Of a DNA stretch of 64,000 bases, positions 34,142 to 44,027 are shown in pieces. The notes beneath the pieces are model-generated. The model was not told the origin of the DNA. It was given only the letters and a program-made list of their open reading frames with translations, and did not search any database. The position numbers were made by a program, and so were the translations under genes. Within the stretch, counting starts at the first letter, position 1. Each line of letters begins with the position of its first letter. Location: positions 124,001-188,000 of the IMG/VR virus record IMGVR_UViG_3300044644_001125; one strand, written 5' to 3'.

Positions 34142-34340
34142 GATAGGTGAAACAACAGATGCAAGATTGACCTACGCAGAAGCAGTGATGTATTGTTTTT
34201 GTTTAGGTGATGGTTGGAGATTGCCGACACGTCACGAATATTTCAATACAGACGAGGCAATGGCGTTTTCATGGTATAACGGTAAACAAAGCACGAGTCT
34301 GCGGCCAGTTACTCCAGTACGAGATCTAAAAGATGATTGA
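34134..34340 (+). CDS. array unit 4
   Basis: YCFCLGDGWRLPT..PVRDLKDD. Confidence 0.75.
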   Translation: MIEIGETTDARLTYAEAVMYCFCLGDGWRLPTRHEYFNTDEAMAFSWYNGKQSTSLRPVTPVRDLKDD

Positions 34341-34557
34341 AACAGAAATTGAAGTAGGTAAACCTGCAAAACCCATGACATATGATGAAGCGGTATTCTA
34401 TTGTTTTTGTTTAGGTGATGGTTGGAGATTGCCAACTGGCGAAGAATATATGCGTTTAAATCTGCAAATGTGTTGGTGGGAAGGTCAACGTTCATTAGGT
34501 GAAAGTTCATTAGGTGAATGGTTAGTTGTTCCAGTGCGAGATCTAAAAGATGATTGA
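34333..34557 (+). CDS. array unit 5
   Basis: YCFCLGDGWRLPT..PVRDLKDD. Confidence 0.75.
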   Translation: MIETEIEVGKPAKPMTYDEAVFYCFCLGDGWRLPTGEEYMRLNLQMCWWEGQRSLGESSLGEWLVVPVRDLKDD

Positions 34558-34765
34558 AACCAAATTTGAAATAGGTGTAAGATCAACAACAAAGATGACC
34601 TATGACGACGCAGTGATGTATTGTTTCTGTTTGGGTGATGGCTGGAGATTACCTACTATTGAAGAATTCGACGGCAATGTAAACTTCGTTTGGAACTTTA
34701 ATGACCAAACTAACCGTAATAACCGTTGGCATGTAATCCCAGTACGAGACTTACAAGATGATTGA
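34550..34765 (+). CDS. array unit 6
   Basis: YCFCLGDGWRLPT..PVRDLQDD. Confidence 0.75.
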   Translation: MIETKFEIGVRSTTKMTYDDAVMYCFCLGDGWRLPTIEEFDGNVNFVWNFNDQTNRNNRWHVIPVRDLQDD

Positions 34766-35015
34766 AATAGCACCTGAAGAATATTGGGTTGAATGTACGT
34801 GGCAAGAAATCAAACTGTACTTGTTTGTATTGACTATTGATGGTAAGCAGGATTGGAGATTACCAACCGAAGAGGAACAAGAGGATTGGTTTGTTAGCAT
34901 ACCGAATATCAAGGCTGAACGATGGACAATTACGGATACTTTGGATGAAGAATGGTATTCTCGAGTTGGATCCAAGTTTTTGTTAATCCCAGTACGAGAT
35001 CTAAAAGATGATTGA
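34758..35015 (+). CDS. array unit 7
   Basis: IDGKQDWRLPT..PVRDLKDD. Confidence 0.75.
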   Translation: MIEIAPEEYWVECTWQEIKLYLFVLTIDGKQDWRLPTEEEQEDWFVSIPNIKAERWTITDTLDEEWYSRVGSKFLLIPVRDLKDD

Positions 35016-35268
35016 GATAGCACCGGAAGAGTATTGGAAAAAATCGACCATCCACAATATCGATTTGTACTTGTTTGTTTTGACGATTGATGGTAAGATT
35101 GGCTGGAGATTGCCTACCAGCGACGAATGGATTTATTACGTGTATGATGCAAGTGACCCAAACCATTGGATGGGTAATTATTGGTTTTCAGATGAACTTG
35201 GTTATATTGAGGATCAGGGAGAACCTGAACTTGATATTATACCAGTAAGAGATCTAAAAGATGATTGA
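35008..35268 (+). CDS. array unit 8
   Basis: IDGKIGWRLPT..PVRDLKDD. Confidence 0.75.
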   Translation: MIEIAPEEYWKKSTIHNIDLYLFVLTIDGKIGWRLPTSDEWIYYVYDASDPNHWMGNYWFSDELGYIEDQGEPELDIIPVRDLKDD

Positions 35269-35473
35269 GATAGGTGAAACTACAAATTCAAGAATGACCT
35301 ACGCCGATGCCGTATTTTACTGTTTTTGTCTAGGTGGCGACTGGAGATTACCAACTGAAGGGGAATCCGCGCGTTATATACCAGGTCACATTGGTTGGTT
35401 AAAAGACGACTTCCTGCGCCATGGTGTTAGTCTTTGGCCCGTAACTCCAGTGCGAGATCTAAAAGATGATTGA
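35261..35473 (+). CDS. array unit 9
   Basis: YCFCLGGDWRLPT..PVRDLKDD. Confidence 0.75.
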   Translation: MIEIGETTNSRMTYADAVFYCFCLGGDWRLPTEGESARYIPGHIGWLKDDFLRHGVSLWPVTPVRDLKDD

Positions 35474-39466: not shown

Positions 39467-40957
39467 CATCCGGTAAATATAGGGTATACTACTTCACATG
39501 TCAACCAAGGAGACCAAATGTCGCAGCTACTCGATCGATTTACTAACTTTTTCAAGAAACAACCACCAGTTGAAATGACTGAACAGGAACGCATGATGTA
39601 CTACATTGAGCAAACCATTCAAAAAAGTAAACTTGAGGCTAAAGAGCATTGCACTGTTTGTATTTTTCAAACTCCTCGTGAAACACCAACCGGTGCTACT
39701 TTAGAATTGTTTCGACCAGAGTTAGTTATCCCAGATGATGCAATTTACATCGAGGATAGATTGATTAAGTTGGGACATTATTGTTCTACCAAGTACAACA
39801 GAAATTCAATAACCGTCTTTGTCTATTTTGACGAGGATCATTTTAACTTTTAAACAGGAGATACGATGGATGATTACTGGTCATACATTGGAGTTGGTGT
39901 AAGTTGTTTTGTATTAGGGTGGGTAATATCACATTGGTATTGCATTCGAACCTTTGGTGATATCTTAGAATACTTTGGTATTACGGTGGATGACTTGGAG
40001 AACATGAAAATCGAAGAGTTGTTAGCCAAGAATGAAGACGAACCAGATGAAACCGAAGTAGCTATTACTGTTGAGACAGTTAACGGCCAACTATATGCTT
40101 ACACTAAAGAAAACCCAAGATTCCTTGCACAAGGCCGTAACCGCGAAGAATTGATTAATGCGTTAGGTGAGAAATTATCTGATGTAACCATCCTTATCTC
40201 TGAAGGAGATGAAGGTTTCGAATTAATGACTACCGAGAACTAAACTATGAATACTAACTTTATTGACGACATTGAACCAAAAACTGAAGAACAACGTTTA
40301 CGTAACATATTACTAGGCATTGCTACTTTGAATGCTGCTGATTATTGTACTGGTACTGAATTACAATGGGCTGAAGCTGCCCTGTTTAGAAAGGTTCGCC
40401 AAGTTGCTCACGAGGCATTGATGGAAGAACCAATTTGTTAATAGTTTATTTCCAATTTGGAAACAATTATTGCTACTTTTAAGCAATAAATACTATATTA
40501 CAACCCACAAGGAAACAATCATGAAAACATCGAACAAAAATCGATCAACTACTGCCCCTTACCTTTGGGGTCCTGGCGAAACAACCGTAGAACCACCTTC
40601 TGCGCATACTGTGGTAGAAAACCCATGGGTTTTACTATTCTCAACTGGTTTTGCTCTTTGGGTATTATCGGGGTTGATAGCATGAAAGAACATGGCACTA
40701 AACAAATCAATGCGTTAATGCACGACTTATCCATTGTTGCAACTGTGTTTTTAGTTGGAGCTACTACATTAATCCTGACATCATTAGGCTAAAAATGTCA
40801 CAAACTCAATTTGATATTATTGAAGATCAAGCTGAACAAATCAAACGTTACAAGGAAGTTGTATTTGGATTGTCAGTGGTGGTTGGAGTACAAACCACTT
40901 TGATACTAGGTGGTGCTCTACTCACCTACTATGCATATTACTATCTTTCTTGAAATC

Positions 40958-40984
40958 AAGGGCTACTACGGTAGCCCTTTTTTG
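40958..40984 (+). terminator. intrinsic terminator
   Basis: AAGGGCTAC-TACG-GTAGCCCTT stem-loop plus T-run. Confidence 0.8.
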
Positions 40985-41269
40985 TGTCTAAAAGATAATT
41001 GAAAATAATGGTTGACATTAGTATTCATTAGCGTTACAATTAACCATAGATTGAAATTACCCAAAAGCAGTGAACGAGATACCTTGAAAAATAGGTTGAC
41101 AATCCCCATTATAAAGTCTATACTTAATCATATTCTAGCTAAAAGCAGTTACACTAAAGTAGTTTACAGAGACCAACTCAATTATTATCGACACCCAGTC
41201 TATTAATTCTATTATCTTTTAGAGACCATCTCAAATCATATCGACACCAAGTCTATTATCTTTTAGGCA

Positions 41270-41745
41270 CCCGCCAACCCTTGCTCACCGAATTACTAGA
41301 ACTAACTTAGAAAGGTGAGAGAACTGTCAAGAAAGCCGTGCACAGGCGACCATAACGTGCCCTTAAACCCTAGTCTAATTGAATCATAGGGGATGGAAGT
41401 TCCGAAGTTGACAGCGGAGATATAACACACTACCCCGCCAGATGAGTTATGGGATACGCCTTCGTACAACCCATTTGTGTTATAGCGAAATTAGTAAAAA
41501 AGGCTAAAGATGGGTTGAGAAAACCCACGTCATATGAATGAGGTAGCAGTTGTTCATATGGCCACCGTCAGATTAATAAGACTGAGCTCGAGGTACCGGC
41601 TGACCGCCTCTGTAATTGCTCTACTGCTGCTGTGATGCGATACTTGTATGCAGAACAACTTTGGCTATGTTTATATAATGTAGCCAAAACAACTTAGAAG
41701 TCACCCGAGTTTTTCGGGTTAAGATGTTCAGCTCCTCATACTGCA
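41270..41745 (+). ncRNA. large structured non-coding RNA candidate (class unknown)
   Basis: no ORF; more than 10 nested helices; G-U wobbles favour + strand; two sigma70 promoters at ~41032 and ~41096. Confidence 0.6.
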
Positions 41746-41859
41746 GTATTAAAAGCCTCTATAATAGATCTATTAATGATTCTATTATAAATCTATAATT
41801 GTAGGAGCGTATAAGATAATTCTAAAAGATAATAGATCCATTACTTCCTACCTGCTTAA

Positions 41860-42190
41860 GCCACGCGCACATACATTTTTAGATTCCCTTATAGCTGTTT
41901 CCATTCGCGCACATACATTTTAGATCTATTCGAACCCATACATTATAGCTTTTTACCAGATGCACACATACATTATAAACTCCATTCGAACACATACATT
42001 TTAAACTAAAAGATAATTACCTAATAAGATCATCTATAAGGCCATAACTAAAGATCATCAATACAAAACATCATAACTAAAAGATAATAGTTCAAAGATA
42101 AACATCATCTATAAGACAATCATAATTCAATCATCTTTTAGTAATAAACATCATCTATAAGACAATCATTGTTACATTATCTTTTAGTAT
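41860..42190. repeat. iteron-like direct repeats (candidate origin)
   Basis: five CATACATT copies; two ATAAACATCATCTATAAGACAATCAT; several TAAAAGATAA sites. Confidence 0.55.
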
Positions 42191-42430
42191 TATTCTTTCA
42201 AATGGGCAGTTACGTCCAAAATCTGGTGAGTTCATATCAGTTCAATTAAATACTAGTTGACATCATATCTATTTGCAGTTACTATCTGCATCACTTCCTA
42301 AAGGAGAATACCAATGGATCCAGATTTACCACGTGACGTAACCTTGGCTATAGCATTCATTATAACTGTTTGCTTCATTTACTTCGTTTGGGAAGAATAA
42401 CCTTTTAACTAATTAACGAGAGATAGTCCG

Positions 42431-42937
42431 ATGGGAATGTTTGACAGCTTTTATATAGAAGATAATGAAGAAATTCAAACCAAGCAATTAGATTGCTTGC
42501 TACATGGGTATTCATTAGGGGATCCAGTTCAGTCTTATGAAAACTTTGATGGACCTACTGGCAATTACTACTTATTCGAGGAGCACGAGAATGTTGGGCT
42601 GATAGTCATTAATAACATTTTCATTGACTGGGTTCGTACCGATGATACCAGACAAGCCACTAGAGAGTTATTCAATAGTTATCTGGAAAAACCTGACTTA
42701 GTGGCATTGAAGTTGTCTGATATTATCAAAGAACGACTTTACCCAGCCAAGCAGAAGGTTAATAAGAAACTACATAATATCCGTAGTGCAGTTCGTGAGT
42801 ACGAGATGTTTAAAGAAAACCCAGATGTAGAGCTAAGATACAGTATGTTGTTCGGTGACTTTAGTAAGTTTAAAGAAGGTGAGACCTTAGAGTCTGTTAT
42901 TGCCAATTATCTAAAAAATGAGGAAACCAATGAATAA
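42431..42937 (+). CDS. hypothetical phage protein
   Basis: MGMFD..QTK.LDC.L..Y motif. Confidence 0.6.
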   Translation: MGMFDSFYIEDNEEIQTKQLDCLLHGYSLGDPVQSYENFDGPTGNYYLFEEHENVGLIVINNIFIDWVRTDDTRQATRELFNSYLEKPDLVALKLSDIIKERLYPAKQKVNKKLHNIRSAVREYEMFKENPDVELRYSMLFGDFSKFKEGETLESVIANYLKNEETNE

Positions 42938-44027
42938 CTTCCCAGTTATTACTAACTTGGCTGAGTTCAAAGCCCAAGTTGGTGAGGTAAAAGGTATTGA
43001 GTTCAAAACTGATGCCAATGGATATACCGTTGCTTCGTATCATATACTCGAAAGCGACGTGTTCAAGAATGAGTATGCACGTGAATGTCGTGGTATTACC
43101 TTTGACCCATCTGGAAAAGTTGTATCAAGACCATTCCACAAGTTCTTTAATTTAAACGAAAACCAGTTTACTCAAGAGGGTGTATTAGATTGGAACTCAG
43201 TAACTTCGGTTATGGACAAAATGGACGGCAGTATGATCACTCCTGTTTTGATTGATGGTTCAATTATCTTCAAAACTAAAAGATCATTTACCTCAGCTGA
43301 AGCCAATTACGCTAATGAGAAGTTCTGCTACAAGTCACACCAGTATCAATTCTCTAAGTTTATGTGTGAACAAGGATTCACACCCATTTTCGAATTGACT
43401 TCACGAGCCAATCGAATTGTTTGTTCGTACAAAGAACCTGCGTTGACTTTGTTAGCCATTAGATCAAATGAGACCGGTGAATATTTTTCACGTGATGATC
43501 TTGTTCTATTAGCAAAAGGTTGGGAAATACCATATGTTAAGTCCTTTATAACTGAATACGAGTTATCTGGTTTATATTGGTTTAAAAATTCAGTAGTGAC
43601 GGATACTAATAAGGAAGGATATGTAATCCAGTTTTCAAATGGCCAAATGGTCAAAATGAAAACTAACTGGTATATGACCTTACATCATGTTGTTACGTTT
43701 ACTACTGAACGCAATGTAGCAGAGATGGTTGTATCTGAGAAAGTTGATGACTTCAAAGCGTATATTGCCAGTATCGATGAACCTGAAATGATGGAAACGG
43801 TTAATCGGGTTGAAAAACGTGTAGTTACTGAGATCAATGATATTATAGTTGATGTTGATGAAATTATCGATTTGAAAGAGTTTGATAACCCAAAAGACTT
43901 TGCTCTTAAGTATCGTAGCCATCCACTATTCTACTTGTTGATGAATTCTTTCAAAGGTAAGGAAAATGATTGGGTTGACTACTTTTTGAAATATCGGTTA
44001 AAATCATATTCTACCGAGTGTATTTGA
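42930..44027 (+). CDS. T4 Rnl1-like RNA ligase
   Basis: RECRG, SRPFHKFFN, KMDGS, FEL..NRIV, EGYV, VKMK. Confidence 0.9.
   Translation: MNNFPVITNLAEFKAQVGEVKGIEFKTDANGYTVASYHILESDVFKNEYARECRGITFDPSGKVVSRPFHKFFNLNENQFTQEGVLDWNSVTSVMDKMDGSMITPVLIDGSIIFKTKRSFTSAEANYANEKFCYKSHQYQFSKFMCEQGFTPIFELTSRANRIVCSYKEPALTLLAIRSNETGEYFSRDDLVLLAKGWEIPYVKSFITEYELSGLYWFKNSVVTDTNKEGYVIQFSNGQMVKMKTNWYMTLHHVVTFTTERNVAEMVVSEKVDDFKAYIASIDEPEMMETVNRVEKRVVTEINDIIVDVDEIIDLKEFDNPKDFALKYRSHPLFYLLMNSFKGKENDWVDYFLKYRLKSYSTECI

Follow-up and report, generated by a model that had tools for sequence, protein, structure and literature searches.

We asked what is encoded by an ORF-free tract at positions 41270-41745 of a 64,000-nt stretch of viral DNA (hereafter the window; positions 124,001 to 188,000 of the IMG/VR record IMGVR_UViG_3300044644_001125), and whether it is a gene for a large structured noncoding RNA. 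The original prediction, made from the sequence alone, had described this tract as locally GC-richer, lying downstream of two sigma70 promoters and able to form many helices and one pseudoknot, and had proposed a large phage RNA of ROOL/GOLLD scale, a ribozyme or a replication primer RNA. The record is 327,256 bp long, estimated to be 92% complete, and corresponds to a T4-like jumbo phage from lake water encoding gp47-like and gp46-like proteins, PhoH, a T4-type terminase and Rnl1. DNA sequencing runs containing it come from lake and other fresh water.

We have first examined the coding potential, composition and promoters of the tract. Only ORFs of 55 aa or less overlap 41266-41745, and each is broken by stops or frameshifts in the paralogous copies described below, so a coding role was rejected. 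The GC content is 0.42-0.445 across 41200-41700, against 0.32-0.38 upstream and 0.23-0.36 downstream, falling to 0.225 at 42000-42200. The preceding gene ends with an intrinsic-terminator-like hairpin at 40958-40979, which is followed by two near-consensus sigma70-type promoters, TTGACA-17-TACAAT at 41012-41040 (+) and TTGACA-17-TATACT at 41096-41124 (+), each with 11 of 12 matches. A further promoter at 42257 and about 430 nt of repeats separate the tract from the next gene. ARAGORN found no tRNA or tmRNA gene in the whole window.

We have then compared the region with Rfam, a check that the original prediction had itself proposed. At gathering thresholds the only hit in the 64-kb window was the Polynucleobacter-1 motif (RF01718) at 41335-41485 (+), with 69.7 bits against a cut-off of 37, an E-value of 9.8e-13 and coverage of the full model (positions 1-141). 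The match comprised helices P1 to P5, the GGGAUGGAA junction, the CACUAYCC junction and the blocks GGGAUGGAA and CACUAUCC...GGAYG, whereas the small CC/GG hairpin is degenerate in the jumbo-phage group. A permissive scan of 40900-42400 at E <= 10 returned no group I or group II intron, RNase P, known ribozyme, ROOL, GOLLD, OLE or HEARO model. It showed a cow-rumen-2 (RF02947) match of 20.1 bits (E 0.83) at 41530-41636, far below the 66 bits required, and no such hit appeared at E <= 1 in 20 homologous loci. We regard this match as chance and rejected cow-rumen-2 as the identity of the 3' domain. Hence, the absence of tRNA, tmRNA and intron signatures was confirmed, but the claim that the tract matches nothing recognisable was only partly right, since its central 151 nt are a catalogued motif, which removes part of the novelty, as the original prediction had foreseen for such a hit.

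Polynucleobacter-1, a motif without a known function, was described in a survey by Weinberg et al. in 2010 (PMC2864571), and the term occurred in no other paper of the literature collection that we searched. That work rated it as a probable RNA, probably cis-regulatory, from Burkholderiales and fresh or estuarine water, and its supplement states that most examples follow genes of family GOS11034, which has a possible cyanophage homologue, and that none was found in a purified phage. The setting of freshwater Burkholderiales is thus shared with the present RNA. In the window, however, the motif is not downstream of any gene in this sense, as a terminator-like hairpin and its own promoters intervene, and most T4-like homologues follow a GIY-YIG gene.

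The genome holds four RF01718 matches, the other three scoring 68.3-80.1 bits. A blastn comparison of the window region with its own genome revealed that each copy lies in a dispersed repeat unit of 1.1-1.25 kb. The window copy (copy C) spans 40987-42234 (+) and is 78-82% identical to units at record positions 34336-35436 (-), 232381-233581 (+) and 310694-311796 (+). The alignment of the four units showed that promoter 2 is kept in all four copies and promoter 1 in three (B, C and D). Conservation begins exactly after the 12-mer ATTATCTTTTAG (41255-41266), an operator-like element that directly abuts the first conserved base of the RNA and has 139 exact copies in the genome, usually in the spacer and -10 of promoters. 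The alignment also showed many compensatory changes, namely CTCACC/GGTGAG to CTCGTC/GACGAG (in copies B and D), TGTCAA/TTGACA to TGCTAA/TTAGCA, TAACAC/GTGTTA to TAGTTC/GAACTA and GGGTT/AACCC to GGACT/AGTCC, together with different P7 stems.

To collect homologues, we have scanned viral contigs with sequence patterns. A first 14-base pattern gave mostly chance hits (7 of 116 loci were real) and was replaced by a gapped 21-base pattern, which found 90 contigs. Seven of these are close relatives of this phage that carry A- or B-type copies, from several metagenomes, and the rest fall into about 14 clusters of T4-like phage fragments. The alignments showed that homology runs far beyond the Rfam model on both sides, and the flanks of the 2010 seed sequences show the same blocks. 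The Rfam model therefore covers only about a quarter to a third of the conserved RNA and lacks the pseudoknot that we call PKa, the whole 3' domain (P6 to P10, a second pseudoknot, PKb, and the loop GGUAC...ACCGCC) and the tail. In contrast, blastn of the region, and of a T4-like homologue, against 50,697 isolated phage genomes gave no match. A scan of one genome per prokaryotic species found 42 bacterial loci, in the Polynucleobacter isolates MWH-HuK1 (two copies), AP-Kaivos-20-H2, 86C-FISCH and P. rarus, in Limnohabitans Bal53 (two loci) and DCL3 (one pattern locus, with a second, weaker Rfam match in that genome), and in related metagenome-assembled genomes. The bacterial copies have the complete architecture.

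The resulting secondary structure, 5' to 3' on the plus strand, starts with hairpin P0 (41284-89 x 41314-19; CTCACC/GGTGAG), seen so far only in the jumbo-phage group. PKa (41324-30 x 41408-14) follows, and its 3' strand lies in the loop of P3. It corresponds to the predicted helix CTGTCAA/TTGACAG, which is real but is a pseudoknot with the P3 hairpin loop rather than a plain enclosing stem. The Rfam core contains P1 (41340-43 x 41357-60), P2 (41368-72 x 41387-91), P3 (41400-04 x 41415-19), P4 (41421-28 x 41477-84) and P5 (41449-53 x 41470-74, extended by 41455-58 x 41463-66). The predicted helices CCCTA/TAGGG, TATAACACA/TGTGTTATA and ATGGG/CCCAT are Rfam helices. A third, small pseudoknot at P1 (41335-37 x 41345-47) is probable; it was seen by eye as GCC/GGC, GGC/GCC, AGC/GCT and TGCC/GGCA, but was not confirmed by the pair counts because of register shifts.

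The 3' domain comprises P6 (41511-16 x 41522-27), P7 (41529-38 x 41553-62), whose loop (41542-41550) is the 5' strand of PKb, P8 (41567-69 x 41580-82), which is weak and without covariation, and P9 (41584-87 x 41618-21), which encloses P10 (41590-93 x 41607-10) and the loop GGUAC...ACCGCC (41592-41608), whose letters are invariant in 23 of 23 sequences and which contains the palindrome GUAC, the first candidate for a contact if the RNA forms a homo-oligomer. The 3' strand of PKb is ACUGCUGCU at 41623-41631. The tail holds a variable hairpin (41660-41689; TTTGGCTA/TAGCCAAA), which is a hairpin in every paralogue with an entirely different sequence each time, and the hairpin ACCCGAG-UUU-UUCGGGU (41703-41719), which is invariant in nine jumbo-type copies and has an equivalent at the same place in the T4-like group. 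A pairing of 41731-41738 with 41803-41811, invariant in all nine jumbo-type copies, closes the last about 65 nt. Based on these alignments, we delimit the RNA to 41266-41812, of which the core 41266-41745 is certain and the 3' extension probable, giving a length of about 480-550 nt. This is near the reported sizes of OLE and ROOL (about 600 nt) and smaller than GOLLD. Besides the loop of P10, the invariant unpaired blocks are GGGANGGAA, CACUAYCC and GCUAAA.

Covariation was the main support for this structure. We have built a covariance model of the 3' domain from 11 sequences and aligned 27 distinct sequences with it. In this alignment 89.4% of the cells paired, against 64% in shuffles and 31-48% when the partners were slid, 29 of 38 pairs showed changes on both sides and the covariation score was 0.658 against 0.206. 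An independent set of 62 distinct sequences, retrieved through a neighbouring protein gene and not through the RNA, gave 89.3% paired cells, against 32-42% in slid controls, and 31 of 38 pairs with double changes. Double changes were found in 6 of 6 pairs of P6, 10 of 10 pairs of P7 (about 96% paired) and 4 of 4 pairs of P9, and the outer P10 pairs also covary. The predicted helices TGGGTT/AACCCA, CATATGAA/TTCATATG and GAGG/CCTC all covary. The proposed pseudoknot between the GGTAGCAGT loop and ACTGCTGCT at 41623 (PKb) showed 7 of 8 and 8 of 8 pairs with double changes on the two alignments, although it was not part of the model used to build them, and more than 10 different complementary sequence pairs occur across phages and bacteria.

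On a structure-blind MAFFT alignment of 23 sequences, PKa had 7 of 7 pairs with double changes and P1 had 3 of 4. Cognate strands of PKa and PKb were more complementary than non-cognate ones, with none of 5000 permutations reaching the observed value, although relatedness inflates this test. The 3'-domain model does not detect the bacterial variants, which were analysed by MAFFT and anchored complementarity and keep both pseudoknots with yet other sequences (for PKa, CUACCG/CGGUAG versus CUACUG/CAGUAG). RNAalifold on a MAFFT alignment of all subgroups failed because hairpins were out of register. The folding energy of the single sequence was not significant (z = -1.46), so that the support comes from covariation and not from thermodynamic stability. 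Of the helices predicted at the outset, GTATG/CATAC is broken in three of four paralogues and was not confirmed, and GAACA/TGTTC never varies, so that covariation says nothing about it; ACCCGA/TCGGGT is invariant in the jumbo-phage group. Taken as a whole, what had been observed in the sequence holds, as nearly all the proposed helices, including the pseudoknot, are real.

We have next looked for transcripts. Nine metatranscriptomic runs hold words of the RNA, and contigs from four of them, from lake or marine samples, were aligned to 40700-42600. They matched only 41259-41633, with one 370-nt contig spanning 41259-41616 and one 90-nt contig identical to the window over 41501-41590, and none matched 40892-41211 or anything beyond 41660. 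Higher-depth contigs in the same runs carry the T4-like versions. This is suggestive of transcription but not proof of it, since these are assembled contigs from runs chosen because they contain words of this RNA, and they show presence rather than abundance or exact ends. The interpretation of the original prediction was thus supported in part: a large, highly structured phage noncoding RNA is supported by covariation over about 150 homologues and by the metatranscriptome contigs, whereas the two specific mechanisms offered, ribozyme and replication primer, are neither shown nor excluded.

The DNA downstream of the RNA bears on the primer hypothesis, in which the transcript would form an R-loop or primer, as ColE1 RNA II or the T4 origin transcripts do, and the four repeat units would be four origins. 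In this phage the RNA is followed, at 41853-42005 (+), by an array of five iteron-like CACATACATT-type repeats and then by a very AT-rich stretch (22% GC). The array belongs to the repeat unit and not to the RNA, and all 13 genomic CACATACATT copies lie in the four units, which are dispersed around the genome. RNase HI is encoded next to copy A, and copy A coincides with a local minimum of cumulative GC skew, but copies B, C and D are not at skew extremes, so that the skew is not decisive. The order of promoter, structured transcript of about 0.5 kb, AT-rich repeat region and nearby RNase H recalls ColE1 RNA II and the T4 origin transcripts in this phage only. In the loci examined for such repeats, which were T4-like and not bacterial, the RNA is instead followed by terminator-like hairpins and a convergent gene. 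Primer RNAs do not need the invariant loops or two covarying pseudoknots, and this deep conservation of tertiary-type features, with the presence of the RNA in loci without any origin-like DNA, argues against a primer role, which we consider very unlikely.

The genes beside the RNA raised the possibility of a protein partner. In the T4-like contig L145 the order is gp47, gp46, a 2OG oxygenase, a small ORF, a 143-157-aa SegE-type GIY-YIG domain-only protein (PF19835), the RNA, terminator-like hairpins and a convergent baseplate gene. In most of the T4-like contigs found by the RNA pattern the RNA starts 40-200 nt after the stop of the GIY-YIG gene, and in three contigs (L142, L175 and L196) the same slot holds a PDDEXK_15 nuclease. 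Of the best 80 loci fetched through the GIY-YIG protein, 68 carry the RNA downstream on the same strand. In 65 of these it begins about 150-440 nt after the gene end, typically about 170 nt, and in three it lies about 1 kb further on, with another gene inserted in the two examined (L240 and L237). Seven of the 12 loci without the RNA are truncated. In the jumbo phage, copy A follows gp47-like, gp46-like, three genes of about 98 aa, PDDEXK_15 (45% identical to the T4-like one and about 0.75 kb upstream of copy A) and RNase HI, which is the same synteny as in the T4-like contigs. The window copy is followed by a 168-aa unknown protein and an Rnl1-like RNA ligase (42918-44027). In bacteria, a DUF6641 gene lies divergently upstream in 34 of 42 loci, a 188-aa tyrosine recombinase lies downstream on the same strand in 17, and larger integrases, a restriction enzyme and transporters lie around, so that these are genomic islands. 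In strain MWH-HuK1 two such modules lie 18 kb apart.

These contexts would be compatible with an RNA subunit of a ribonucleoprotein formed with the small DNA enzymes encoded beside it (the SegE/EndoII-like GIY-YIG protein, PDDEXK_15 or, in bacteria, the tyrosine recombinase). The RNA would then give a catalytic-domain-only protein its substrate recognition or regulation, as the omega-RNAs of HEARO/IsrB do. As with HEARO/IsrB and TnpB omega-RNA, a structured RNA of several hundred nt is encoded right beside a small nuclease gene on mobile DNA, but the nucleases here are GIY-YIG or PD-(D/E)XK and not RuvC-type. The association is also not obligatory. The GIY-YIG family is much wider than the RNA, occurring in 505 isolated phage records, mostly cyanophages, of which the two tested, Melnitz and a Variovorax phage, lack the RNA. 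Three of the four jumbo-phage copies (B, C and D) have no nuclease nearby, and the bacterial copies lack both nucleases. The AF2 model of their constant neighbour DUF6641 (pLDDT 86) had no nuclease fold, with no significant PDB match and matches only to uncharacterised families in AFDB, so that a hidden nuclease was rejected. No guide segment or transposon ends were identified, and a search of the phage genome, which does not cover host targets, found no match of the variable hairpin above chance. Since the whole gp47-gp46-nuclease-RNA order is syntenic, adjacency may be inherited gene order. We therefore regard a cofactor role as unlikely, although the recurrent small nuclease gene could mean a protein partner.

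A conserved RNA gene could also merely serve as a landmark or target for free-standing homing endonucleases and integrases, as tRNA and tmRNA genes do, in which case the neighbours would say nothing about its own function. Different nuclease families in the same slot and integrases flanking the bacterial copies would fit this view. However, it explains the neighbours and not the RNA, the GIY-YIG gene is widely conserved rather than sporadic, and the bacterial copies are complete, diverged and multi-copy inside islands, not partial att duplications. We consider this the least likely alternative.

A large ribozyme, in which the invariant junctions held together by three pseudoknots would form an active site, is also unlikely on present evidence. 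The size, the multiple pseudoknots and the invariant unpaired nucleotides resemble large ribozymes, and RNA-repair and RNA-processing genes lie nearby (the Rnl1-like ligase, and RNase HI next to copy A). Nonetheless, no ribozyme family of Rfam matched at E <= 10, no conserved candidate cleavage or ligation junction was identified, and four gene copies with double promoters suit a stoichiometric role better than a catalyst.

The analysis establishes that 41266 to about 41812 (+) encodes a stand-alone structured noncoding RNA with about ten helices and two long-range pseudoknots, which is the full-length form of the Polynucleobacter-1 motif. It also establishes that the jumbo phage keeps four diverged copies whose helices are maintained by compensatory changes, and that the same RNA occurs at the end of the gp47-gp46-...-small-nuclease operon of many uncultured freshwater T4-like phages and in integrase-bearing genomic islands of Polynucleobacter, Limnohabitans and relatives. 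What the RNA does is inferred. We favour, with moderate confidence, a model in which host RNA polymerase transcribes it early from the paired promoters, the RNA starting near 41266 or being trimmed to it. It would accumulate to high levels and act in trans, in stoichiometric amounts, as a compact folded particle, that is, a scaffold, a decoy for a host or defence factor, or a self-assembling "ornate" RNA of the ROOL/GOLLD type, and not as an mRNA leader, a guide or a primer. This view is based on the stand-alone unit with paired strong promoters, on the four diverged copies maintained despite the recombination risk of dispersed repeats and on neighbours that differ between element types. The stoichiometric particle itself rests only on gene dosage and promoter strength, and none of the alternatives is excluded, although the primer and guide ideas have specific observations against them.

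ROOL, GOLLD and OLE are likewise large, elaborately folded noncoding RNAs of unknown function, often carried by phages or prophages, with complex structure supported mainly by covariation. The present RNA has no sequence or model match to them and no tRNA neighbours, and its host clade differs. Self-assembly has been shown by cryo-EM for GOLLD, ROOL and a third large RNA that we take to be OLE (10.1101/2024.12.08.627333), and remains a hypothesis for the RNA studied here. A bolder reading, which we find unlikely but not excluded, is that the extended Polynucleobacter-1 RNA is a new class of large functional RNA shared by lytic T4-like phages, jumbo phages and integrative islands of freshwater Burkholderiales. 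It would act either as a self-assembling RNA particle or sponge that disables a host or defence factor, or as the RNA partner that gives substrate specificity to minimal, catalytic-domain-only DNA enzymes (GIY-YIG, PD-(D/E)XK, short tyrosine recombinase).

As its central third was already catalogued, this is not a new family. In the literature collection searched, to which this statement is limited, we found no description of the full extent of the RNA, about three times the Rfam model, of the two long-range pseudoknots, of the invariant 3'-domain loop, of the phage and island carriers or of the four-copy arrangement. Large, intricately folded RNAs without a known function are rare, and each one studied so far has either revealed new biochemistry or remains an open problem. 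The present work turns a neglected 141-nt motif into a candidate of about 0.5 kb, with about 150 homologues for covariation or cryo-EM work. Its natural contexts are informative, with four promoter-driven copies in a jumbo phage, a fixed slot behind the recombination genes of T4-like phages and copies in islands of culturable Polynucleobacter and Limnohabitans strains, which make experiments possible without having the phages in hand. It also corrects the record, since a motif that had been rated probably cis-regulatory and found in no purified phage is here a free-standing gene with its own promoters in a phage genome. Its identity is secure as a large structured RNA gene carried by mobile elements of freshwater Burkholderiales.

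Two genes downstream of the RNA, after a 168-aa protein with no family match, we have found a T4 Rnl1-type RNA ligase (window 42918-44027, + strand; PF09511, E 9e-31). Upstream of repeat copy A, the phage genome (G000:C1) encodes a PDDEXK_15 endonuclease and an RNase HI (PF00075, E 2e-46) at G000:C1:309549-310523 (1492-2466 of the locus extracted as L205). The two genes lie immediately before the copy and follow gp47-like and gp46-like genes. In L140, L145 and other T4-like contigs, and in 505 isolated phage records, we have found a 145-aa GIY-YIG domain-only protein (PF19835, phrog_447), which is labelled "NAD synthetase" in many phage records. The protein has a GIY-YIG nuclease domain, so that annotation looks wrong.

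The surroundings of the repeat copies were also inspected in the phage genome. Arrays of tandem paralogous ORFs of about 97 aa flank copies A and D, and a related 221-aa gene lies near copy B (G000:C1 about 230-232 kb, 236.5-238.7 kb and 308.6-309.5 kb; loci L289 and L290 of this genome). The two members tested, next to copies A and B, match the Lcl C-terminal domain. At G000:C1:228237-229793 and 235564-236361 (locus L289) the phage also encodes a PhoH-like protein with a weak Hint (intein-like) signal in its N-terminal part, as well as a full DnaJ comprising the J domain and the C-terminal domain.

In Polynucleobacter sp. MWH-HuK1 (loci L335/L336, G002:C1:394000-428000), two modules, each containing a short tyrosine recombinase, the RNA and DUF6641, lie 18 kb apart in the same orientation. 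Between them lie a LlaMI-type restriction enzyme, a methyltransferase, an MFS transporter and a 424-aa integrase. Such an arrangement looks like tandem genomic islands that share this module.

Five CACATACATT-type repeats, spaced 26-42 nt apart, are present at window 41853-42005, and repeats of this type occur only inside the four repeat units (13 copies genome-wide). They are followed at 42000-42200 by a stretch of 22.5% GC that carries more copies of a probable operator motif, and the arrangement is iteron-like. The motif in question is the 12-mer ATTATCTTTTAG, which was found 139 times in the 327-kb genome, where about 0.04 copies are expected by chance. In this part of the window it lies at 40988-40999 (-), 41211-41222 (+), 41255-41266 (+), 41822-41833 (-), 42006-42017 (-), 42077-42088 (-) and 42176-42187 (+). 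The sites often form inverted pairs about 28 nt apart, and the typical arrangement is TTGACA-N9-TTATCTTT-TAGAAT, with the motif thus filling the spacer and the -10 of sigma70-like promoters. The 12-mer is probably the operator of a phage-encoded global regulator of early promoters.
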